From the sequence record OQ828465.1: DNA of 64,000 nt; one strand, written 5' to 3'. A model generated the notes under the pieces. The model saw only the letters and a program-made list of their open reading frames with translations. It was not told the origin of the DNA and searched no databases. Below, piece by piece: positions 4,914 to 64,000 of this stretch (its first letter is position 1; each line of letters starts with the position of its first letter). The translations under genes and the position numbers were made by a program.

Positions 4914-5306
4914 ATGAACTTCATCAAAGAAAACGCACTTGGTCTTATTGCACTGGCAGTTGGCGCAACAGCCGTTGCTGCCATCCTCGCGGTCAAAGCT
5001 ACCGTAAAGGAAGACGGTCAGGCTGTAGCCGAACAGATCGAAAGCGGTATCTCTGATATTCTTATCGATAAGATCTCCACCTACCGCAACAGCGAACAAC
5101 ATCGCAAGCTGGTAAGTCGTATTCGTCGTGATCGAAATATCACAACGGAAGAGTTCATCAGCCGTATCCAGTTGGATATCGCCATGAACGTCCTGCCGGA
5201 AGTAGAAGTACTTCTGGAATCGCATCGTGACCAGGTAACCGAAGAAGAATTCGAACGCCTGGTAGCCAACCTTCAACACTTCGTACAACGGATCATTGCC
5301 AAATGA
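4914..5306 (+). CDS. Hypothetical protein with N-terminal TM helix
   Basis: ALGLIALAVGATAVAAILAV; AAGGA RBS. Confidence 0.75.
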   Translation: MNFIKENALGLIALAVGATAVAAILAVKATVKEDGQAVAEQIESGISDILIDKISTYRNSEQHRKLVSRIRRDRNITTEEFISRIQLDIAMNVLPEVEVLLESHRDQVTEEEFERLVANLQHFVQRIIAK

Positions 5307-5479
5307 AAGTAAAGATCGGAATGGGATTCATTGCAGTACTGATGGGTATCGCTGCCGCAGGTGGTGAGTTCTATTACGATCTCACTAAACCTGAGGGCAA
5401 GGTATCTAAAGAGTGGTGCCAACACCCGGCTAAGCCGAAATGTACCATGTATGCATTCAACGTCAAAGAGGACAAGTAA
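5303..5479 (+). CDS. Small membrane-anchored protein with Cys pair (58 aa, not in ORF track)
   Basis: MKVKIGMGFIAVLMGIAAAGGEFYY...WCQHPAKPKC; ATGA overlap upstream, abuts next ATG. Confidence 0.7.
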   Translation: MKVKIGMGFIAVLMGIAAAGGEFYYDLTKPEGKVSKEWCQHPAKPKCTMYAFNVKEDK

Positions 5480-6082
5480 ATGGAACAGCGTCTCCTGAAA
5501 GCTTTCAAGAACATAGATCCCGTGTTCACGCAGAAACAGCACAACGAGTTGATCGATCGACGCGGTGCCGACATGGGTTTGACTGTCAAGGTCGACGCCA
5601 TGCTACTGTTGATCAAGAACGACCCGGTCAAGTACAAAGACCTGGAAACCAAGATCATCGAAGACGCCATCGCCTTCATAAAAGGTGAGCGTTCCTCCGA
5701 TATCGCCCTGGGCCTGTTCAACAAGATGGTTTATCAGGACAACGGTCCCGATGCCGTCGGCCTGCTGGAATACGCCAAGGTTTCCGAGTACAAGAACATC
5801 CACGTGGATGAGTCCTGTGCTTGGGTCAACGTCTACCGTGGCAAGCTGAAGACCTTCATGGTTACATTCATCTCCCAATGTGCCGGTAACGCTCTGGTAC
5901 GTTCGGAACTGAAGACTCTTCAACATCAGCGTTACAATATCGCTAAGCAGAACTTCCGCGACATGAACAAACCTGTGCCTGAAGGTACTGTGAAAGAACT
6001 GGCCAAAATGTACGGTAAATCCATCTCGGAAATCCGTCGCATGAAAGCCGAAGGTCGTCTTGGGGAACTGACCCAAGAATAA
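5480..6082 (+). CDS. Hypothetical protein; C-terminal HTH-like segment
   Basis: 200 aa; TVKELAKMYGKSISEIRRM resembles a helix-turn-helix. Confidence 0.75.
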   Translation: MEQRLLKAFKNIDPVFTQKQHNELIDRRGADMGLTVKVDAMLLLIKNDPVKYKDLETKIIEDAIAFIKGERSSDIALGLFNKMVYQDNGPDAVGLLEYAKVSEYKNIHVDESCAWVNVYRGKLKTFMVTFISQCAGNALVRSELKTLQHQRYNIAKQNFRDMNKPVPEGTVKELAKMYGKSISEIRRMKAEGRLGELTQE

Positions 6083-6176
6083 TAGATGGGTCTCTTCGGA
6101 GACCCCATCTCAATGCGTCTTGAAAAGGATGCATTGAGATGTACTCAACCCAATCAATCGTAAAAAGGAAATTACC

Positions 6177-7289
6177 ATGAAACAGTATCGTGAACCCGTA
6201 ACCCGTCTGACCAAAGAAAAACTGGAATGGGTTATCAGCCGTCGTAAAGAAAGAAAGGCCGAACAACCTTTCGGTCGTGCCCATTTCCCTGCCGGTACTC
6301 GTGCTATCTTCGAATCCTGCTCCCTTCGTTACCTGGATGAGAATGAACGTGTGTATCCTGGACAGCGCTACGAGACATTCGAAGCTACTGTTCTCGGCGT
6401 TGTGGCCAATGGTCATAACAGTTATGTCGCTATTCTGGACATGCCCTGTGATCTTACTGAAAGCCGTAACAAGGCAATCAACGTCAGTTGGTGCCGTGGT
6501 ATTGTATCGCGCGGTGAAGGTAATTTCACCTGGTTCAAAGAAGAGTCAACCGAGTATGATCGCAATCATGGTTGGAACATCCGTGAGAAACATCCGACTG
6601 TTCGTTGGGCAGAAGGTCCTCGTCCTACTAAAGTACGTAGCCTTACCTGGGCAGAGGAATTCGATTATAACCGCGCAGTAGATCCGGTATACATCGAAAT
6701 CAACAAACATCACAGTCAGTACTATATCACTGACATGCGTTCGTTTGTGATGTTCACTCTTCGGGAACATCCTGCTTATGCAAACTCGTTTAAAGATCAT
6801 CTGCACAAACTGGACAAGCTAGTCATGGCGCTGTACTCCGATCCGACTATCAAAGCAGCTGAAGTAAAGCTGTCTCGCTACTCTGTTAGCTGGTTGATCA
6901 GCAAGAAGAAGTTCCATAAAGTCCTGCAACGCCTGCTTCCGTTCTACAAGACTTCTCGTCGTAAGGCGCAAGAAGAAGACGATAAAGCAATTAGCGAGAT
7001 GTATGAGGCTGAACTGGACCGTGACCTCAGTGAACAGTATGGTGAGTCTGATGATACCTCGGATGAATCAAGCTATTCATGGAATGACAGCACGCCCCTG
7101 GATGATGATGATCTGAATGTGTTTGATATGTACGACGACTCGGCATGCTCGCGTGAAATCAGTGATGATGTTCAACCCAAAACTATTGGTGAACTCCTGC
7201 GTGAAGCAATGGGGAACCCTGAAGAAGAGAAATCCAAATTAGTTATTGGAAGTATGGAAACTCTTTCTAAAGCGGTTATCATCAAATAG
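6177..7289 (+). CDS. Early protein, probable phiKZ gp14-like ribosome-associated factor
   Basis: 370 aa with acidic disordered C-terminal tail; position in early block; identity from recall/synteny only. Confidence 0.5.
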   Translation: MKQYREPVTRLTKEKLEWVISRRKERKAEQPFGRAHFPAGTRAIFESCSLRYLDENERVYPGQRYETFEATVLGVVANGHNSYVAILDMPCDLTESRNKAINVSWCRGIVSRGEGNFTWFKEESTEYDRNHGWNIREKHPTVRWAEGPRPTKVRSLTWAEEFDYNRAVDPVYIEINKHHSQYYITDMRSFVMFTLREHPAYANSFKDHLHKLDKLVMALYSDPTIKAAEVKLSRYSVSWLISKKKFHKVLQRLLPFYKTSRRKAQEEDDKAISEMYEAELDRDLSEQYGESDDTSDESSYSWNDSTPLDDDDLNVFDMYDDSACSREISDDVQPKTIGELLREAMGNPEEEKSKLVIGSMETLSKAVIIK

Positions 7290-9115: not shown

Positions 9116-9508
9116 ATGAATTATAATGCAGAGAAATATGCCGCACTGCTAGTTTCAATTGCAGCAAACATTGACACTGTAAATAAACTCACCAAAGAAA
9201 TTTTATCGTCTTCTGATAATAGGGATTTTCTCTATGATGTGCATCAAATGACTGACATGTCCCTCGCCAGTCTTCATACGCATCTAACTAAAGAAGTCGA
9301 AAAGTTGGTAGAAACAATGGATCTAGTTAAAGATGGTCTATATGTCCAGGATGTTGAACTCATTAAGGGTAAGGGAAACTGGCGACATATCGCGGATAAT
9401 GAACCTACCATCAACGCTATTAAAGCACTGCGTAAACACATTGGCGAAATCAGTGCATTAGAAGCTAGAACTGTTGTTAAAGGTTACAAGGCAGGTGTCT
9501 TAAAATAA
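9116..9508 (+). CDS. Protein with C-terminal ribosomal bL12-CTD-like motif
   Basis: INAIKALRKHIGEISALEARTVVKG resembles the bL12 KI.VIK.VR..TG.LGLKEAK..VE motif. Confidence 0.55.
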   Translation: MNYNAEKYAALLVSIAANIDTVNKLTKEILSSSDNRDFLYDVHQMTDMSLASLHTHLTKEVEKLVETMDLVKDGLYVQDVELIKGKGNWRHIADNEPTINAIKALRKHIGEISALEARTVVKGYKAGVLK

Positions 9509-9570
9509 CATCGAATAGTATTAAGTCTATCTTCTAGGAGGTATACTTAATAAATCATGAGGAAAATATA

Positions 9571-9900
9571 ATGTCCAATATGAAAAAATCTAGTTTGAAA
9601 GAATTCTTCGAACATATCACTCAGGCTGATCCATTTAATCCTTATTCCTTCATCTACTCCAGACCTATACAATACATTGGTGAAGATAGCGAGTACGCAC
9701 TACATGTTACGTATGTGCATGGTGCAGCTTACATTGAAGGTCTTGTTGGCCATGAAGGAATCAGAATCAATGTATTCTACAATAAACTCCAAGGTATTCA
9801 ACTTTGGACATACTTTGATAACGAACCTCGTGTTGATTCATGGCCGTATTATCAAGTTGATGCAGCTTTAGAAGAAATCATCCGCCTAACTAAACTATAA
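9571..9900 (+). CDS. Hypothetical protein
   Basis: 109 aa, GAGGA RBS. Confidence 0.75.
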   Translation: MSNMKKSSLKEFFEHITQADPFNPYSFIYSRPIQYIGEDSEYALHVTYVHGAAYIEGLVGHEGIRINVFYNKLQGIQLWTYFDNEPRVDSWPYYQVDAALEEIIRLTKL

Positions 9901-9920
9901 ACTCTATTTATAAAAAATAG

Positions 9921-10139
9921 GTGAAGAAAATGATCTATCTGGGATGGTTTACCATTATCTTTGTTACAATGAGTCTATGTCTGTTTTATGTATTTTGTCA
10001 CCGTAGTATTCGTGAATCACACCCAGGTGTAATAGAAAAACAGACTACTCGAAAAATTGTTATTTGGGCTGGTATTCTATTGGCACTCGCTTACTTAAAT
10101 GAAATCAGCCGAGTCTATATAGAGCAGATGGTAACCTAA
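9921..10139 (+). CDS. Small two-TM membrane protein
   Basis: Two hydrophobic segments (IYLGWFTIIFVTMSLCLFYVF; IVIWAGILLALAYL). Confidence 0.65.
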   Translation: MKKMIYLGWFTIIFVTMSLCLFYVFCHRSIRESHPGVIEKQTTRKIVIWAGILLALAYLNEISRVYIEQMVT

Positions 10140-10196
10140 ATATTCAATAACTCCGAAATAATCAAAACTATTTAATATATCAAAAGGAATATTTCA

Positions 10197-10484
10197 ATGT
10201 TCGAAACTCAAGTCGCTCTTACTGATGAACTCAAACAGACTTTTGATCAGATGACTCAAGAATTCATCCGTGAAAAAGGTTACATCACTTGTGAATTCTC
10301 GATTCAACAAAAATACCTCGTGGCAGCGCACGACTACGTTTATGTGAAAAACCGCGAGCTGCCTTCGTATGGAATGTGGCGTATCTTCAAATGCGAGGCA
10401 TGTATCAGCCATAATGTGGATCATCCTTATCATGTCGAAATCTTGGCACTGGCGGCCATCGATACGAAGGAACACAATATCTAA
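10197..10484 (+). CDS. Hypothetical protein
   Basis: 95 aa, AAGGA RBS; its 5' 35 nt recur at 11293-11327. Confidence 0.75.
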   Translation: MFETQVALTDELKQTFDQMTQEFIREKGYITCEFSIQQKYLVAAHDYVYVKNRELPSYGMWRIFKCEACISHNVDHPYHVEILALAAIDTKEHNI

Positions 10485-10534
10485 CAACTGGAAGATAATC
10501 ATAATGTCCAACATACTAAATGTGAGCCCACCGT

Positions 10535-10840
10535 GTGGGAACAAGAGAAGTGATTAACATTAATCATGATCTACCTATCTGGATATTACTACTGTTAAGT
10601 ACAGCTACATCATTCATCTACGCCTTTGTAAAAACCTTTCAACAAAGAAACATCTTTCATGGGTACAAAAAAGCTGCTTTCTTCACCTCATGGGGTATCA
10701 GTACCCTTGAGTTGACCACCATTGGACTATTTGTAATAGTGGGTCTTCCTGCTATCATATCCAGCGGTCTAGGTGGTTCGATAGGCGTCGTGTTGGCAAT
10801 GACGTTCCATGATAAGATTTTTCGTAAAACAACAGAATAG
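10535..10840 (+). CDS. Small multi-TM membrane protein
   Basis: Three hydrophobic helices incl. GLGGSIGVVLAM; start uncertain. Confidence 0.7.
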   Translation: MGTREVININHDLPIWILLLLSTATSFIYAFVKTFQQRNIFHGYKKAAFFTSWGISTLELTTIGLFVIVGLPAIISSGLGGSIGVVLAMTFHDKIFRKTTE

Positions 10841-10851
10841 GAAAAAACATA

Positions 10852-11190
10852 ATGTCTAGGAAACTTGGAAAGAAACATCCTCGCAATCATCACGAAGATG
10901 CAAAGAAATACGAAACTCGGCTACGTACCGAGAAAGCTGAGTTGGCTAACTGCCGGCTTGGTCAACTGTACTCGGTTCGAATCCTGAATGATAACTGCTT
11001 CTTGCGTAATCGATTCATGTGTCAGGAACAAGATATGTTCGATCCTCTTCGCTTGACCCGTGCTAAACGAGAACGTTATTTCAAAGGGGAGCGTTACTGG
11101 CTAAATGCCAACGGCGCTAAGTTCATCCGTTCCGATTATGAAAAGAACTGGGCCAAAAACAAACGTAAGGAGATGGCCAATGAGCAGTAG
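10852..11190 (+). CDS. Basic (K/R-rich) hypothetical protein
   Basis: 112 aa, AGGA RBS. Confidence 0.75.
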   Translation: MSRKLGKKHPRNHHEDAKKYETRLRTEKAELANCRLGQLYSVRILNDNCFLRNRFMCQEQDMFDPLRLTRAKRERYFKGERYWLNANGAKFIRSDYEKNWAKNKRKEMANEQ

Positions 11191-11320
11191 TTATAATCCA
11201 CCGGTGGACACCGTTGATGTCCTCCATATCGACTGCGAGTATGAAAAGTTCTCGTTTGGCAAGTTGTTCCAACGAATGATCGATCATTTCGGTGTTCGAA
11301 ACTCAAGGCGTTCTTACTGA
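11180..11320 (+). pseudogene. Truncated paralog of 13120-13404 fused to a fragment of the 10197 gene
   Basis: First 38 codons align to the 13120 ORF; remainder matches 10198-10232 out of frame; AGGAG RBS. Confidence 0.65.
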
Positions 11321-11577
11321 TGAACTCTAACAAGCTACGAGGGATACTGACTGACCTCGGTATACTCCCACCTCGCTTTGTTGAGAGCACCGATATCCGT
11401 GTCGGCAACTTCCGATTTCAGCGCTGGAAAACCCAGGTCCTCAAACCTGCTGCTCCTGGTTATCGGAAGTGGATTGACGTGGGTAGGTTAGAATGGGTGG
11501 AGGTTAAATACCACCTCAACAAATTACTTAAAGAGAATAATCTCAATATCCAAGAAGAAAGTAATCGGTCTGGATAA
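11320..11577 (+). CDS. Hypothetical protein
   Basis: 85 aa, TGATG coupling. Confidence 0.7.
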   Translation: MNSNKLRGILTDLGILPPRFVESTDIRVGNFRFQRWKTQVLKPAAPGYRKWIDVGRLEWVEVKYHLNKLLKENNLNIQEESNRSG

Positions 11578-11671
11578 CCTCCGGAAGCTCCTGTCAGATC
11601 AACTCAACCCGCCACGTCAGTTAACAGACGCTGTACGCGAGAAAAATCTTCACAGCAAGTAACGATATAAG

Positions 11672-11700
11672 GCCCCTCCCTTCGGGTAGGGGTTGTCTAT
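11672..11700 (+). terminator. Intrinsic terminator (UUCG loop)
   Basis: GCCCCTCCC-TTCG-GGTAGGGGT. Confidence 0.7.
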
Positions 11701-11723
11701 TCATTTCTTAACAGGAAATTCTA

Positions 11724-12059
11724 ATGGAAGACTTCAAAGAAATCGAGATTTACAGTATGACGTTCATCGACCATTCGGAAAATGCTTCTCGTGTAGTGAT
11801 TGCACAGATCACTACTCTGGATGATCGTACTGTTTACGGGGTAATGGAGGTCAATGGTTTCGGCGGCCAGGACAACACCAACCTGCGTCGGTTCGAACAG
11901 AACCGTCAGTACGCTCGTTACTTCTTCACCAAGTCGATAGCCACTGCTTACGCCGAGGCTTACGTCAAGTACCTGAATAACGACATGGTCGAACAAGACT
12001 ACCTCGATATGAATACCGGCTACAACTACACCGACTTCATGAATATGGTAAATATCTGA
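11724..12059 (+). CDS. Hypothetical protein
   Basis: 111 aa, AGGA RBS. Confidence 0.8.
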   Translation: MEDFKEIEIYSMTFIDHSENASRVVIAQITTLDDRTVYGVMEVNGFGGQDNTNLRRFEQNRQYARYFFTKSIATAYAEAYVKYLNNDMVEQDYLDMNTGYNYTDFMNMVNI

Positions 12060-12087
12060 GGTCATCATGGTACTGGAGGATGTATAA

Positions 12088-12330
12088 GTGAAGAAGTTCT
12101 ATGTAACTAAAGAACAGGTTGAAATGGTATTGGCACACCAATATACCCAAGATGACTATACTCGTGAAGTCGGTCCACATAAAACCACTTACAATATCAT
12201 CAACAACCACCCAGAATACCAAGAGGCGTTCTGGCAAACAGCAGTTGCATTGGAGGCGTTCGAGCGTCAGAAGCTGGGTAACTTCGACGCAATCCATCTT
12301 CCTGATCTGATGAAACACCTGGAGGTATAA
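12088..12330 (+). CDS. Hypothetical protein
   Basis: 80 aa, GGAGG RBS, GTG start. Confidence 0.7.
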   Translation: MKKFYVTKEQVEMVLAHQYTQDDYTREVGPHKTTYNIINNHPEYQEAFWQTAVALEAFERQKLGNFDAIHLPDLMKHLEV

Positions 12331-12348
12331 ATCATGGATATGTAAAAA

Positions 12349-12852
12349 TTGTTTGATATGATTGAACGAGTGTCAGATCGTTCCGATGCATTGAATACGC
12401 CGAATCTCAAAGAAATCCTTCATTGGATTCGTTATTCTGGTCTGAGCGATGTGATCTATGATGGTGGAAAAGCTGACAAGATTATTGATCAATTGCGTAC
12501 AGCCTCACCAAATACATGGTTCGAAATTCGTGATCTACGATATTCTCTGATTCGTCATATTGTAGCTGTTATCTGTGAAGATGAAGGGATGGATCTGGTA
12601 TACCGTTTTCCAAATTCAGATAGGTCATTACATGTAAATTTGGTTGTTCGCGAAACGCATACAGGTAATGAAGCGGTCTACGGCATCTTTAATAATGATC
12701 CCTCGTGTCCAGATGAATCTGTGTGGGAATATGTATCCGTTAATTGTTCGCGACTGTTTGATGCGATTCGGTGGCGTAAACGTGATCCTAAATGCGTCAG
12801 TATTTATGGTTGGAGCGATCCAATTAACATCAATCAACCATCCGATTACTAA
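12349..12852 (+). CDS. Hypothetical protein
   Basis: 167 aa. Confidence 0.75.
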   Translation: MFDMIERVSDRSDALNTPNLKEILHWIRYSGLSDVIYDGGKADKIIDQLRTASPNTWFEIRDLRYSLIRHIVAVICEDEGMDLVYRFPNSDRSLHVNLVVRETHTGNEAVYGIFNNDPSCPDESVWEYVSVNCSRLFDAIRWRKRDPKCVSIYGWSDPININQPSDY

Positions 12853-13082
12853 TGAAAGAATCAACCATGACAACGAAAATGTATAATGGCCCTTATGGTA
12901 ATTATAAGGCTGGTACTTATGGAGCTGTATTAAATGCATTAGCCGAACAAGAAGGTCGACCACTGACGTGGATCGATCAACATGTACTTGGTCAAGGTAA
13001 GTTGTTGAAGCGAAGTGATGAATCTATCGTTGTGGCCACTTGGGAATGGCACGATAATGAAATCATTTTCAATTTTTCCTAA
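12852..13082 (+). CDS. Hypothetical protein
   Basis: 76 aa, TAATG coupling. Confidence 0.7.
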   Translation: MKESTMTTKMYNGPYGNYKAGTYGAVLNALAEQEGRPLTWIDQHVLGQGKLLKRSDESIVVATWEWHDNEIIFNFS

Positions 13083-13119
13083 ACTCAGTTAAATCGAAAT
13101 AAACACAAGGAGATGACAA

Positions 13120-13404
13120 ATGGGTAATAGTTATAATTCACCAGTGGACACTGTTGATGTCCTCCACATTGACTGCGAGTACGAAACTTTCTCATTCGGT
13201 AAGTTATTCCAACGTATGGTCGATCACTTCGGTAGCGATATCAAGCTGAATGATTTCGAAATCGAAGCAACCAAGATCAAAGTACGTGGTTGCAAATGTT
13301 GTTCGAGCCTGGATGACTACACGGATTATATTCGTGTAACTCGTTTGACTCAACCTGCAACTGATACCGAGACCCTAACGATTCAGGGTCTTATTGCCAA
13401 ATGA
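13120..13404 (+). CDS. Hypothetical protein with GCKCC motif
   Basis: 94 aa, AAGGAG RBS; full-length paralog of 11180 fragment. Confidence 0.8.
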   Translation: MGNSYNSPVDTVDVLHIDCEYETFSFGKLFQRMVDHFGSDIKLNDFEIEATKIKVRGCKCCSSLDDYTDYIRVTRLTQPATDTETLTIQGLIAK

Positions 13405-13527
13405 CGGTATAAAGGAATTCCCATTAGTTATTAAACTAATGGGATTCTAAACTAATTTACATCATTAAATAGAACTTACGAGATAGCTATCGTAAATCAT
13501 AATAATAACGTAAGTTCTGAAAAAGAT

Positions 13528-47001: not shown

Positions 47002-48882
47002 ATGGCTGTTAACGAAAACGAAATCGGCACCGTTCAAACTCAAGCTACCACTCCGGCTCCGCAACCCACTGCACAGCGTCAAGCTCAACGTCCTGCTGGC
47101 GCACCTGGGTCAACTACTGGCATTAACCATCTAATGCGTCGCTCTGGGCGGCTAGATGGTTCTGATGCTCGTTCAGCAGATGCCCTACAAGTATTCACTA
47201 AAGTAAAAGAAGAAGCAATCCGCCATCAGGACCTACCTGATGATTTCGATATCCATCGTTTCGATCGCGATGCGCAACAAGTTGGTATGGCTGGTCTACT
47301 AATTGTTAAACTAGCTAAAGATATCAATGGTTCCATGAAGGCATTCGTTCGTACACTAGTACTCGATAACCTACCTGGTACTCGCATCCGTCCCCGTACC
47401 CACAAGATCAACAATGGTCTAACTGACGACATCATTGAAGAGAAGGTACTACCGCGTGATGTATTCACTGCTCAATACTGGAGCAAGATCGGCGAATTCC
47501 TACGGAACCGTTACAACATCCCTGGTCTAGAAGTACTATCTGCCGGTCCCCGTGCAGTGTATGCTGACTTCGACTTCAAAGATGAACTAGCTGTTAAGAA
47601 CCTACTAGTTGAATCTGTTAATATCTGTGAAGATGCTATCGCACGTCGTAACAATGAGACTCCGTTCTCTATTGCGACCCACATCAAAGCAGAAAACGAA
47701 CAGCTTACCTGCAACCTAGACTACAATGGTATTCCGGTTAAAGATAGCTGCGGTAATCCGATTCGTTCTGACCTGGTTATCTCCACTAGCCGTGGTAAGA
47801 AAACCAACGTGCCTGAGAACGAGTTCTATGATACCGATAGCCAGCTAAACCAAGTTAGTCTATTCGTAGATCTACATTGGACTCCGACCACTGGCCAGCA
47901 ACAAGGTATGTTTGGCGTAACTCTACCTGGTGCAGCTCTACCTCCGCAGTTCACTCCTTACATCGTTATCACTGACGTTCGTAAGGCATCCTGGATCCAA
48001 GCATGGACTCTAGAAATGTGGCTGTTCGCACTCGGTAATGCGTATCGTGCAACTGCATCCCAGGCATGGGCTCGTACCCTAATGCCGAAGATCGCTACTA
48101 GCAAGATGCGTGATATTGGTGCACTTGGTTATTACTCAGAGCTAGGTAAAGCGATTGAAACTCGCACCGAAGCATTCATGGCAGACGACAGCAACTTCGT
48201 AATGCTAATGAACAAGATGGTTAACCAGAACCCTGCATTCCAGATCGATATCGATCCGATGGGTGACAACTCTGCTCTTGAGCAAGTAGTCCTAGATGCA
48301 GCTGGTGGCGTAAACCAAGCTCGTGCAGTTAGCCTGATCTTCCAAGCTCTAACTAACCTATATGGCACTGATTTCCGTCAGTTCTATAACCTAGCTGAAG
48401 CTGGTCCGATCATCTTTGACAACCATCATGAAGTAGACCTCGGTCACTACACTGATGAGCATGGCGAACTAAGTGACCGTCGTGATCTTGACGTTCTAGG
48501 TGCCATGAACATGTCTGAAGGTAACGATCAAGAGTGGAAGACCTGGTATGCTACTCAAGTAGGTAATGACCACATTGTGCGTCGTATGAATAACAGTAAA
48601 GGCTTCGACAAGATGTACCTAGGTAACGTTACCTATACTGGTCGTGCTCGTCGTCTAACCTTTAACCCGAAATTCATCACCGCAATGGATGCCGCAGCAG
48701 CAGCAGCTGGTGTAACTGTAACCATGGAAAACCTAATTACCAACTTCGGTCAACAGCGCTTCGCTGGTTACACCGGTATGGGTAACATGGCTGTTTCTGG
48801 TAGTGCACAAGTTGGCATGGCTGGCAGCATGGGTCAAACTTACGGCGCTCCTTCCTATAATGCACCGGGTACCTGGTACTAA
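47002..48882 (+). CDS. chmA: Chimallin, phage nucleus shell protein (gp54)
   Basis: 626 aa, [12 protein letters not shown] start, immediately upstream of nvRNAP beta'; highly biased codon usage; G/M-rich C-terminal segments. Confidence 0.92.
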
Positions 48883-49276: not shown

Positions 49277-50413
49277 ATGGGTCTTTATGCCAAAGTTGTT
49301 GATCATGATGAAGTACATGATCAATTTACGGGTAAACGTATTTATGCCAATGATTACAATACGAGTAACTCAGATGAGAAAGAAGAATTTGATAGGCATT
49401 TCTATTCTCATTTCCAAGATTCAGAAGCAATTGAAAGTAGCGTAAGTTGTGATTGTCGAGCAATCGAAGACGCACATAAACTCGGAGTAATCTGTGATAT
49501 TTGTAATACTCCAGTTGTCAATACTTCTAGCCGCCCTATCGAACCATCAATGTGGGTTCGTACACCAAAACATGTACGTAGTCTAATTAACCCACGTTTA
49601 ATCATTATGCTAACCGGATATCTAGTAACTAAAGAATTCGATTTCTTAGCATATCTAACTGATACTTCTTATCGATACGATGTGGAATCTATTGGTTCTA
49701 AAGAAACACGCAGAAAAGTAGATAGGCTACTGCATCGAGGATTTGAAAGAGGATTAAATCACTTCATTGATAATTTCAATGAGATCTTCCAATTCCTACT
49801 AGATGCAAATATTATTTCTAATAATAAATCCGAATTCGCTCAATTCGTTGCTCAGAATAAAGATAAGTTATTCCCTAAATATTTACCAGTTCCTTCTAAA
49901 CTCTGTTTCGTAGCAGAATCAACCACATCTGGTACTTACTTAGATAAACCAATTGAAGCAGCAATTGATGCTACCTTAACCTTCGCTAGTATTGATGCAT
50001 CATCTGTACCACTTAGTCCAATTAAAGCTCAGAATAGGACTATGCGAGGACTAAGACTATATGGCCAGTTCTACGAGATCTACGCAAAATCACGAATTGC
50101 TCAAAAGCCTGGTCTTGCTCGGCGTCACATGTTTGGTGCTCGTCTCAACGCTACGGCACGTGCAGTAATCACTTCTATTAGTGACCCGCATGATTATGAT
50201 GAATTACATATCCCTTGGGGAGTAGGTTGTCAATTATTAAAGTATCATCTAACTAACAAGTTAAAAGCTAAGTTTAACATGACAACTCGTGAAGCATTCT
50301 CATTTGTATATGAGAATGTACTTCAATATAACCAAATCATCGCTGATCTATTTAAAGAGTTAATTGCAGAGGCCGCACCATATAAAGGAATGGGTTGCAC
50401 TTTTCACCGAAAT
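49277..50413 (+). CDS. nvRNAP beta'-like subunit (gp55), exon 1
   Basis: Zn-binding CDC..CDIC, RRHMFGARLNATARAVITS; ends at FHRN just before intron 1. Confidence 0.9.
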
Positions 50414-50718
50414 TAATTTGTATATTAATACTAAATGGTTTCCTTGTAATAGAAATATTACTCGACAAAACTCCTTTAATTGCTGGGACATCTCAATGAG
50501 ACAATCAGCAGCGAAGCTTTCCAGAAATGGATTGAACGTTCAACGACTATCGAAAGGCACGAAAGTGAACCGAGTAGAGTAGAGTCAAGTGACTCGAAAT
50601 GGGGAGCACCTTACTGGGTAATGCCAAAGGTGAAGATATAGTCTGGTCTGCATGGTGACATGCAGCTGTCTATTATTAATAGACGGGATAAGCTTAACGA
50701 ACTTATCTGAACACAACG
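50414..50718 (+). ncRNA. Group I intron 1 (305 nt, no ORF)
   Basis: Exon ends in U, intron ends in G; P1 GAAAU/GUUUC with U.G; P AATTGCTGGGA, Q AATCAGCAG, R TTCAACGACTA, S AAGATATAGTC. Confidence 0.9.
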
Positions 50719-50826
50719 CCGACCCTTCAACGTGGATCTACTCAACAATTCTTTATTACTAAAGTAAAAGATGACATTAATGATAATTCAATCAGCATGT
50801 CAGTATTATGCCTTAAAGCGCCTAAT
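50719..50826 (+). CDS. nvRNAP beta'-like subunit, exon 2 (36 codons)
   Basis: PTLQRGSTQQFFITKVKDDINDNSISMSVLCLKAPN; restores HRN-PTL and PN-ADFDGD in frame. Confidence 0.9.
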
Positions 50827-51319
50827 GGACAACTAACTAAATAAGGTAAAAACAATGGAACAAAACGGAGTAGTGTCCGTCTTTGATCCGGCTTCATTTA
50901 AAATTGAATATGAAGTGCTTGATAAATACCTTATTAAGTTAATCAAGTCTAGTTCCCCCAGTGAGTAATCATTGGGGTGAGTTCTCTCTAATTGCTGGGA
51001 TATCCTGTTAAACTAATCTACCACTGCGAGTCGAAAGACAAAGCCAAGGTTTGAAAAAGATTAGGTAGGGCCAATCAGCAGCCAAGCTCCGTAACATTCC
51101 ATTTAGGAATAGGAGAAGGTTCAACGACTATTACGGTATCAGGTGCACCGGTCCTAGAAATAGGATGTAGGGTCAAGTGACTCGAAATGGGAGACACCCC
51201 ACTCCGAAAGGAAGGGTGAAGATATAGTCTGGTCTGCATGGCGACATGCAGCAGGTGGTAATTATCATGTGGTAATTATACTACCGGGTATGGATTAACG
51301 ACCCATACTGAACATAACG
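50827..51319 (+). ncRNA. Group I intron 2 (493 nt) inside the catalytic NADFDGD motif
   Basis: P1 U/GGACA...UGUCC-G; same P, Q, R, S elements as intron 1; terminal G. Confidence 0.9.
50855..50968 (+). pseudogene. 37-codon ORF in intron 2, probable homing-endonuclease remnant
   Basis: TAAGGT RBS + ATG in P1 loop; MEQNGVVSVFDPASFKIEYEVLDKYLIKLIKSSSPSE*. Confidence 0.5.
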
Positions 51320-51538
51320 GCGGATTTTGACGGCGATCAATTGAATTTAACGTTAATGCCTGATGTGTATTTAACCAAAGCAACTGAACGCATTGCTCCA
51401 CATACATGGGTTCTATCTATTGATGAACCACATGAAATCTCAGGTAACCTTGAATTACAGGGTCCTGTTGTAGAAACAATTATTAACTGGGCGCATGAGA
51501 AGTATTTACCGCCATTAGAAGAATGGTTGAAGTCGTAA
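51320..51538 (+). CDS. nvRNAP beta'-like subunit, exon 3 (gp56.1-like)
   Basis: ADFDGDQLNLTLMPD...; spliced product 487 aa. Confidence 0.92.
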   Translation, partial: ADFDGDQLNLTLMPDVYLTKATERIAPHTWVLSIDEPHEISGNLELQGPVVETIINWAHEKYLPPLEEWLKS

Positions 51539-51679
51539 TAATAAACTTACCCCTACTATTTATGTAGTAGGGGGCTTTATTTCCTGTTATGGCGGCGACT
51601 AACCATGGATGTAAAGTTCCACTGGATTTAATTTCAGATTTATATCACTAAGATGCAATAGTGATAAGGGGAATACCCA

Positions 51680-51868
51680 ATGTCTAATATTCGTGAAATT
51701 ATTCGACGTAACCCGGAATGTTTATCACAAGTCGAATGAGATGAACGTGAAGCCAGATCGGTAGCCGTATTCACTAAGAGATATATTACTTGCGGGAATG
51801 GTGATGTAGTGGTAAACAGAAGGTTTGTCGATGCATATGTCGAAATGATCTCTAAGCTTAATGATTAA
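51680..51868 (+). pseudogene. 62-codon ORF interrupted by a single in-frame TGA (51737-51739)
   Basis: Promoter TATATCAC 51641-51648, AAGGGG RBS; frame stays open 42 codons past the TGA. Confidence 0.55.
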
Positions 51869-51927
51869 AAGCAAAATAAATTAATAGGGGAGTTTGAATC
51901 CCCTATTAATTCTTTGAGGCTAGTAGT

Positions 51928-63848: not shown

Positions 63849-63968
63849 ATGAGATTGGTGATACCAGACATTGAAGTCTTACAAAAGGCTATATCTAAAA
63901 ACAGCGCAAATAAGAAATATAGTAGTACTGCATCTTGTCTAATTAATGGTGATAAACAAAATGGCTGA
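63849..63968 (+). CDS. 39-aa ORF overlapping the start of gp71
   Basis: AGGAGG RBS, behind AAGATCTATATCAT (63809-63822); TGA overlaps gp71 ATG. Confidence 0.55.
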   Translation: MRLVIPDIEVLQKAISKNSANKKYSSTASCLINGDKQNG

Positions 63969-64000
63969 ACTAGGTAAACGTGAAATTGATCTAACCCTAT
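63961..64000 (+). CDS. 5' end of nvRNAP beta-like subunit (gp71), truncated by window edge
   Basis: MAELGKREIDLTL resembles recalled phiKZ gp71 N-terminus; follows gp70. Confidence 0.7.
   Translation, partial: MAELGKREIDLTL

Follow-up and report, generated by a model that had tools for sequence, protein, structure and literature searches.

Introduction

Introns around genes gp56, gp72 and gp179 of phage phiKZ were predicted in 2002 (Mesyanzhinov et al., cited in PMC10914365 and PMC11512511), and the one in gp55/gp56/gp56.1 is the nearest described counterpart of an intron analyzed here. Our subject is the gp55 homologue of Pseudomonas phage PA_ZH1 (Phikzvirus; OQ828465.1), which encodes the beta'-N subunit of the non-virion RNA polymerase (nvRNAP) and lies in three pieces within the first 64 kb of the record (the window). 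The phiKZ intron resembles the second of two PA_ZH1 introns in its gene, in its insertion point (N415/A416, the slash marking a junction) and in its ribozyme, which is 97-99% identical when the body of the gp56 open reading frame (ORF) is excluded. It differs in that it carries a full 334-aa NUMOD4-HNH-NUMOD1 endonuclease, whereas PA_ZH1 intron 2 keeps just a 37-codon stump, and in that its 3' module (P9 to P9.2) is of a different variant. Moreover, the position that we call site 1 (N379/P380) is intron-free in phiKZ but filled in PA_ZH1.

Other phage systems share part of this arrangement. The td intron of T4 (subgroup IA2, with the endonuclease I-TevI) has the same placement of P7.1/P7.2 and also interrupts, in a lytic phage, the gene of a conserved enzyme, but the host gene is a different one and the endonuclease is a GIY-YIG enzyme encoded in P6a, whereas the ORFs of the PA_ZH1 family are HNH genes in the P1 loop. 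In PhiPA3, a group I intron also lies beside polymerase catalytic aspartates, in gp210 (Birkholz et al. 2024, PMC11620839). However, gp210 is the beta subunit of the virion polymerase, and the HNH endonuclease of its intron is active and harms a co-infecting intron-less relative, phiKZ (PMC11620839), whereas the PA_ZH1 introns are without an active endonuclease. Predicted HNH endonuclease genes also differ between KTN4 and phiKZ (PMC4908380). Several related group I introns within a single phage gene are known from Twort orf142, which has three, among which exon skipping is documented (Landthaler and Shub 1999, cited in PMC11620839), and from DNA polymerase genes of Bastillevirinae, which have two or three (PMC11878797). 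In contrast to these, the gp55 sites crowd into 43 codons, and exons of 18, 15, 12 and 6 nt occur in relatives of PA_ZH1.

We conclude, with a probability of about 0.9, that two group I introns have to be removed to make the gp55 catalytic subunit of PA_ZH1 and that both are decayed mobile introns. They belong to a known kind, the phage IA2 group I introns of essential genes, represented here by decayed, immobile copies.

Results and Discussion

Three exons make one conserved protein

The features of the locus are collected in Table 1. An earlier reading of this DNA that used the letters and their translations (the sequence-only reading) had proposed that removal of 50414-50718 and 50827-51319 leaves an in-frame protein of 487 aa. 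Its coordinates and the end bases of exons and introns were all confirmed when we read the sequence. Exon 1 ends in TTT CAC CGA AAT, with T50413 as the last base and an in-frame TAA immediately after it (50414-50416); exon 2 runs from CCG ACC CTT (PTL) to GCG CCT AAT at 50826; and exon 3 begins at 51320 with GCG GAT TTT GAC GGC GAT (ADFDGD), so that intron 2 does split N/ADFDGD, as had been stated. The record presents the pieces differently: 49277-50416 and 51356-51538 are both labelled hypothetical protein, and 50855-50968 is labelled 'HNH homing endonuclease'.

Table 1. Exons, introns and intron helices of the PA_ZH1 gp55 homologue, with the related intron of gp71-73. Positions are those of the window unless indicated.
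Feature	Position	Strand	Description
Exon 1, gp55 homologue (nvRNAP beta'-N subunit)	49277..50413	+	379 codons, end ..CTFHRN
Intron 1, ORF-less group I intron, N379/P380	50414..50718	+	305 nt, starts with in-frame TAA, ends with G50718
Intron 1 P1	50409..50443	+	exon GAAAU / guide GUUUC, wobble U50413.G50438, small terminal loop
Intron 1 P2	50446-50461	+	
Intron 1 P7	50545-50550 with 50638-50643	+	
Intron 1 P7.1/P7.2	within 50551-50598	+	insert
Intron 1 P9	50648-50665	+	two more 3' hairpins beyond
Exon 2, PTLQRGSTQQFFITKVKDDINDNSISMSVLCLKAPN	50719..50826	+	108 nt = 36 codons, PTLQRG..LKAPN
Intron 2, group I intron, N415/A416	50827..51319	+	493 nt, ends with G51319
Intron 2 extended P1	50824..50954	+	from constrained folds; ORF in loop
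HNH homing endonuclease gene stump	50855..50968	+	37 codons, stop in P2 loop
Intron 2 P2	50956-50977	+	
Intron 2 P7	51126-51131 with 51224-51229	+	
Intron 2 P9	51234-51251	+	
Exon 3	51320..51538	+	72 codons + stop, opens with ADFDGD (catalytic Mg-binding motif)
gp71-73 intron, ORF-less group I	record 65144-65447 (locus L014, 3144-3447)		304 nt, Rfam 84 bits, FHGGN/KGVICK

The three exon translations were searched separately against chain A of PDB entry 7OGP, which is phiKZ gp55 and was deposited under the name PHIKZ055 plus PHIKZ056.1. They aligned as follows: exon 1 (379/379) with chain positions 21-399, exon 2 (36/36) with 400-435 and exon 3 (71/71) with 436-506, that is, the exons tile the chain without gap or overlap. 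Exon 2 is directly contiguous with exon 1 in phiKZ, T2P, Wadjak1, MKR2 and 30-1. The joined product (487 aa, 55.6 kDa) reads HRN/PTLQRG and KAPN/ADFDGD, and the uninterrupted genes of PhiPA3 (488 aa), 201phi2-1 (487 aa) and Noxifer (490 aa) align with it gap-free over both junctions. Thus, by the tiling and by the orthologues, removal of the introns yields an uninterrupted, conserved reading frame, as expected for group I introns. In the structure paper on the phiKZ enzyme, the catalytic motif of gp55 is numbered 417-DFDGD-421 (PMC8287921), and the DFDGD of the joined PA_ZH1 product has exactly these numbers. Native gp55, from polymerase purified out of infected cells, has a size of 56 kDa (PMC4666361). 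This matches the joined product and not the unspliced phiKZ ORF, for which we computed 47.9 kDa, and we count it as support for splicing.

It could be argued that the pieces are never joined as RNA, and that either the gene is broken or the polymerase assembles from separate fragments, since GenBank lists separate hypothetical proteins and polymerases of this family consist of several polypeptides in any case (PMC4666361), with beta and beta' both split. We consider this very improbable. Exon 2 has neither a start codon nor a ribosome-binding site of its own, the native protein is as large as the joined exons predict, each interruption is a group I ribozyme over its full length and has the correct splice-site bases, and the intron-free orthologues are collinear with the joined exons. 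In addition, seven isolated and propagated phages have exactly the two-intron layout of PA_ZH1, so the gene must work.

Both interruptions are group I introns

An Rfam scan of the 64 kb yielded two matches to RF00028 (gathering score, 50 bits) and no others. One lies in intron 1 (50416-50665; 88.9 bits, E 2e-21) and one in intron 2 (50931-51251; 75.6 bits, E 2e-17), both over model positions 1-253, and the group I covariance-model check that had been proposed with the sequence-only reading was therefore positive. The alignment places P3, P4-P6, P8, J8/7 and P9, i.e. the conserved core. Both introns have an exon-final U in a wobble with the guide G (U50413.G50438 and U50826.G50952) and end in an omega G (G50718 and G51319); these bases had been pointed out before, and the wobbles are now backed by comparison of the guides. 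An exon-final U and an intron-final G were present in all 23 introns tabulated from 13 Phikzvirus genomes and also in the six metagenome-phage introns (6/6). Both introns folded better than every shuffle (z -2.9 for intron 1 and -5.0 for intron 2).

Covariation was assessed with RNAalifold on six introns from site 1 and from gp71-73 (a related polymerase intron, see below), using slid alignments and 500 column shuffles as controls. Changes on both sides were found in 23 of the 67 pairs, as compared with 1-4 pairs after sliding by 1-3 columns and with 15 or fewer in the shuffles, a contrast that is inflated because the structure was derived from the same alignment. In this family 93% of the cells were paired; P7 itself was invariant and hence uninformative.

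With regard to the subgroup, the Rfam alignment leaves an insert of 48 nt (intron 1) or 55 nt (intron 2) between P7 and the 3' strand of P3. Both inserts fold into two hairpins (P7.1/P7.2) with compensatory changes, seen for intron 2 in the comparison with phage 2PS, and this is the signature of subgroup IA. In BLAST, the 3' 140 nt of intron 1 were 76-78% identical to the T4-type td intron. The RB3 td locus gave no Rfam match at the gathering threshold, probably owing to its large ORF insert. Judged by the inserts and the kinship with td, both introns are IA2-like and close to the T4 td intron, in keeping with the previous description of them as IA-like with extra helices between P7 and P3'.

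Intron 1 has lost all trace of an endonuclease gene

The helices of intron 1 follow the order P2, P3, P4-P6, P7, P8, P9, two 3' hairpins and the terminal G. Its P1 was recovered by a duplex search and by unconstrained minimum free energy folding; it extends past the splice site into the intron, where a small loop closes it. The guide GGUUUCC is present in all site-1 variants, including those of the metagenome phages L021 and L022, and the stems that close the loop differ in sequence among the variants yet still pair. This loop is a mere 12-nt hairpin in PA_ZH1; in GUMS, ANB1, fMGyn, SL2 and OMKO1 it houses an HNH gene of 273-277 aa, of which there are two alleles with 73% identity. Two ORFs of 54 and 72 aa that overlap intron 1 were unsupported and were taken as chance.

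Intron 2 keeps the two ends of gp56

Intron 2 has the same core plan as intron 1 but a larger P5 extension. Its 5' 130 nt make a single long hairpin. The exon part of P1 consists of A50824-U50954, A50825-U50953 and U50826.G50952, with A50951 bulged, and the extension of GGAC (50827-30) paired with GUCU (50947-50), UAACU with AGUUA, and then AAUAAGGU (50840-47) with ACCUUAUU, a stem that occludes the ribosome-binding site of the mini-ORF in the loop. The guide GUU(C) (50952-50955) stands between this long hairpin and P2. The junction can also be drawn one base rightward (G/G) with no change in the mRNA; since the introns of T2P, KEN49 and MKR2 start with C, the 5' splice site of intron 2 is fixed after the U.

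We favored this P1 for two reasons. In constrained folds it reached -47.5 kcal/mol, against -38.6 for a pairing to 50969-50976, and the GUUC motif lies at an unchanged place, after the loop stem and before P2, in all four diverged site-2 introns that were compared; in the three from metagenome phages, the loop stems and P2 have an entirely different sequence but the pairing is kept. Diverged site-2 introns that follow an exon ending in GAAU gain a fourth exon-guide pair. The other candidate P1, in which CCUAAU pairs with 50971-50976 and the splice site has a U-A pair, was 9 kcal/mol worse and is not conserved in metagenome phage L022, and it was retained as a caveat only.

The ORF in the P1 loop is the remnant of an endonuclease gene. 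According to BLASTP, its residues 1-19 are the N-terminus of phiKZ gp56 and its residues 21-37 are gp56 residues 318-334, so that it joins in frame approximately 19 codons from the start of that gene and 17 from its end. Relative to phiKZ, about 890 nt with the HNH and NUMOD domains have been lost, and a Pfam search of the 37-aa ORF found no domain and no HNH motif. Its final 17 codons coincide with the 3' strand of P1, with the guide sequence and with P2, and this overlap with ribozyme helices explains the survival of the 3' end of gp56. In Wadjak1 the deletion junction is different, which points to a second, independent loss of gp56. Since a functional homing endonuclease is absent from both introns, they are immobile derivatives of mobile introns. 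Hence, the earlier statement that the introns are endonuclease-free is accurate for intron 1 but has to be amended for intron 2, with its stump. Elsewhere in intron 2, the P9.1 region has a 14-nt tandem duplication (51252-51279; CAGGTGGTAATTAT / CATGTGGTAATTAT) that is single copy in T2P.

Proposed splicing and the points against it

We propose that in each intron the guide would pair with the last bases of the upstream exon and place a U.G wobble at the site of cleavage, which a free guanosine would attack. The freed exon would then attack after the last G of the intron. Removal of both introns would leave an mRNA for the 487-aa protein with its NADFDGD catalytic loop, while translation of unspliced RNA would halt at the TAA that is the first codon of intron 1 or at a stop five codons into intron 2. 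Both introns derive from mobile introns whose P1 loop contained a gene for an HNH homing endonuclease. In intron 1 this gene is wholly lost, and in intron 2 its two ends remain, fused in frame. Splicing in vivo is probably autocatalytic. The two introns have a single difference in their final 12 nt and 95% identity over P7-P9, and it is reasonable to expect that introns so similar may carry a risk of skipping exon 2.

Some observations weigh against this account. The long-read transcriptome of phiKZ provided no evidence of splicing at gp56, gp72 or gp179 (PMC10914365), and this null result conflicts with the protein data. The previous claim that phiKZ gp55 is spliced thus finds support in the protein size of 56 kDa and in the position of DFDGD at 417-421, and none in that RNA study. 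A 487-aa form, which would represent a spliced cDNA or an intron-free allele, is absent from the 25-member Phikzvirus protein cluster, where the forms are of 379, 419-423 and 437 aa, plus exon 3 pieces. The P1 of intron 2 includes just 3 bp with the exon, and the second pairing, to 50969-50976 with a U-A at the splice site, is a less likely alternative. Finally, no P10 pairing that was convincing by eye was found in either intron. An exon-guide pairing of 3 bp is likewise found in the Azoarcus intron.

Relatives show filled, decayed and empty sites

To compare intron content, we examined 13 Phikzvirus genomes at single-base resolution and sorted the 40 best records into classes according to their spans, which fit sums of the component lengths exactly. 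This is the survey of both sites that had been recommended with the sequence-only reading, and it revealed occupied, decayed and empty states. At site 1, 24 records were empty, nine had an ORF-less intron and seven an endonuclease-bearing one. Site 2 was empty in OMKO1 only; 16 records had a stump-bearing or ORF-less intron and 23 one of a size that accommodates an endonuclease. A third site, after D421, was filled in OMKO1 and KEN49 and, judged from a 437-aa ORF, also in PA7 (JX233784). None of the 40 best records was an all-empty allele, as site 2 or the adjacent site 3 was always filled. Intact HNH genes occupy the same sites in GUMS, ANB1, SL2, OMKO1 and phiKZ, and the ORFs of relatives at these sites encode HNH_3 proteins; the site-2 ORF of ANB1 has already lost the HNH domain.

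The exon differences among the 13 genomes were all synonymous and were arranged in haplotype blocks that switch at the intron sites, which is the pattern that co-conversion during homing would leave. In OMKO1 (locus L013, 3483-3513), seven synonymous changes lie within 30 nt around the empty site 2, and they could be either a co-conversion tract from a site-3 donor or an escape from the site-2 endonuclease. The gp55 homologue of KEN49 (PP456877; locus L010, 2138-4374) holds three Rfam-supported group I introns, at sites 1-3, and its 18-nt exon (L010 3969-3986) encodes exactly ADFDGD.

These distributions bear on why ORF-less introns are kept. They may persist neutrally, as a phase of a homing cycle in which the endonuclease decays once the sites are filled and no immunity is gained; the ribozyme would stay because any deletion in the catalytic loop that is not exact is lethal, and an exact one requires recombination with an empty allele. 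All stages of such a cycle coexist at sites 1 and 2 among the 40 records, ANB1 provides an ORF already without its HNH domain, gp56 was deleted independently at least twice, and the ORF ends that are kept overlap ribozyme helices, so that structure alone accounts for the limits of the deletions. We give neutral persistence slightly less than an even chance. It is compatible with a benefit, and phages with intact endonucleases at both sites share the host, so empty sites should be cut; in 40 of 40 relatives site 2 or site 3 is filled and none is all-empty. A filled site would plausibly shield its carrier from intact endonucleases encoded at these sites in relatives. A more far-reaching proposal is that the catalytic-loop codons of chimallivirus nvRNAP are a contested landing strip for homing endonucleases on which ORF-less introns are kept by selection, since a filled site is uncuttable by the enzyme of a competitor. 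We put this forward as a tentative idea that is rather unlikely to hold in full. Endonuclease ORFs that extend across the guide and P2 may be tolerable to these phages because of a transcription compartment free of ribosomes.

Distant phages stack introns around very short exons

A search with the exon 1 protein gave 102 homologue clusters with ORF lengths peaking near 380, 415-430 and 487 aa, and roughly half of these clusters seem to stop at an intron site. Beyond the genus we checked four contigs (L021, L022, L023 and L024). In L021, from an ocean phage whose protein is 48% identical, site 1 holds an ORF-less intron that shares the guide, has a compensated P2 and scored slightly below the Rfam threshold (44.6 bits). 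L024 carries an HNH gene within an intron at site 2. L022 (JGI 3300038437; 9132-13467) has three HNH-bearing introns and a 15-nt exon that encodes ADFDG. L023 (ENA ERZ28615128 scaffold_23; 5240-6414) has three ORF-less introns within N/AD/FDGD/Q, separated by exons of 6 nt (GCGGAT) and 12 nt, and its site-2 intron retains the start of the same endonuclease stump. Throughout the four contigs, U is the final base of each upstream exon and G that of each intron, and joining the exons gives a frame that reads NADFDGDQLN. L022 and L023, both from distant chimalliviruses, add the insertion points D417/F418 and G420/D421, which brings the total to at least five within 43 codons, the others being N379/P380, N415/A416 and D421/Q422. 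Our literature search found no paper on site-1 or site-3 introns, on stacked arrangements or on phage micro-exons.

The site-1 core of L022 (9132-10710) is 84% identical to that of PA_ZH1, in contrast to 61% for exon 1 at the DNA level, and the site-2 intron of L024 (3419-4547) is 80% identical to the PA_ZH1 site-1 core but 71% to the site-2 core. The disparity between core and exon in L022, together with a core of site-1 type at site 2 in L024, shows that cores move between phages and between sites.

The introns are kin, and a third one splits the same polymerase

The near-identical blocks that the sequence-only reading had noticed between introns 1 and 2 are real: 41 nt (95%), 37 nt (84%) and three of 17-19 nt (89-94%). 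Its description of the two as paralogous needs qualifying. They are related, with 77% core identity, but the closest relative of intron 1 is the gp71-73 intron (83%), with which it shares an exact block of 75 nt from P3 to P7; core identity with the second site-1 allele is 74%. The P9-P9.1 modules are combined differently among site-1 and site-2 introns. Judged by these sequences, the site-1 and site-2 introns are one intron family with recombining parts.

The gp71-73 homologue, a beta-like subunit, begins in the last 40 nt of the window (63961-64000). At the counterpart of its intron site, phiKZ holds the HNH gene gp72. The site-1 and gp71-73 introns (50414-50416; L014 3144-3146) both begin AAU/UAAU; the stop is therefore the first intron codon, and unspliced RNA would give a cleanly truncated protein. 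Because the gp71-73 gene is also split, the PA_ZH1 nvRNAP would need three splicing events. The two that had been counted previously do apply to gp55, where both introns must go, but they fall short for the enzyme as a whole.

That one enzyme needs three splicing events might suggest that the introns gate the polymerase supply, so that the early-to-middle switch is timed by how efficiently splicing proceeds or by an RNA chaperone of the phage or the host; splicing would then be neither purely autocatalytic nor constitutive. Spliced phiKZ reads were absent from the long-read data under the conditions of that study (PMC10914365), the growth state is known to influence the splicing of T4 introns (Sandegren and Sjoberg 2007, cited in PMC10914365), and Gp55 appears as two bands on a Western blot, according to the legend (PMC10612078); as a speculation, the bands could be the full-length and the truncated product. 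We nevertheless judge such gating to be improbable, as many close relatives are without intron 1, and PhiPA3, 201phi2-1 and Noxifer have the same gene order and life style with none of these introns, so that no conserved regulatory role is required.

Neighborhood of the gene

Upstream of the gp55 homologue, 47002-48882 encodes a 626-aa ORF that is the nuclear-shell protein (chimallin, the phiKZ gp54 homologue), labelled only as hypothetical in the record. This matches the order in phiKZ, with gp55 next, and a nuclear-shell gene also precedes the gp55 homologue in all the distant contigs. A scan for sigma-70 promoters gave fewer matches than the shuffles did and is uninformative, which is to be expected in a phage that has its own polymerases. 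Downstream, a 341-nt insert relative to phiKZ (51539-51870) begins within the last two codons of exon 3 and changes the C-terminus to ..WLKS from the ..WLKAK of phiKZ. It contains a strong terminator-like hairpin (51550-51573) and a small ORF (51681-51740) shortened by a CGA to TGA change, whose GUMS counterpart has 62 aa.

Conclusions

The true product of the locus is a 487-aa catalytic subunit, where the record has the labels 'hypothetical protein' and 'HNH homing endonuclease'. Knock-downs, antibodies and expression constructs in phages that are candidates for therapy need the joined sequence. With the gp71-73 intron counted, an indispensable phage enzyme relies on three ribozymes. The wider pattern across relatives is more interesting than the two introns of the window: among close relatives on the same host, these sites can be seen in all phases of invasion by introns and of their decay, and distant phages stack three introns. 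gp55 is therefore a compact natural system in which to test whether filled sites protect against the endonucleases of competitors, and it is also suited to tests of the recognition of very short exons and of skipping between related neighboring introns.

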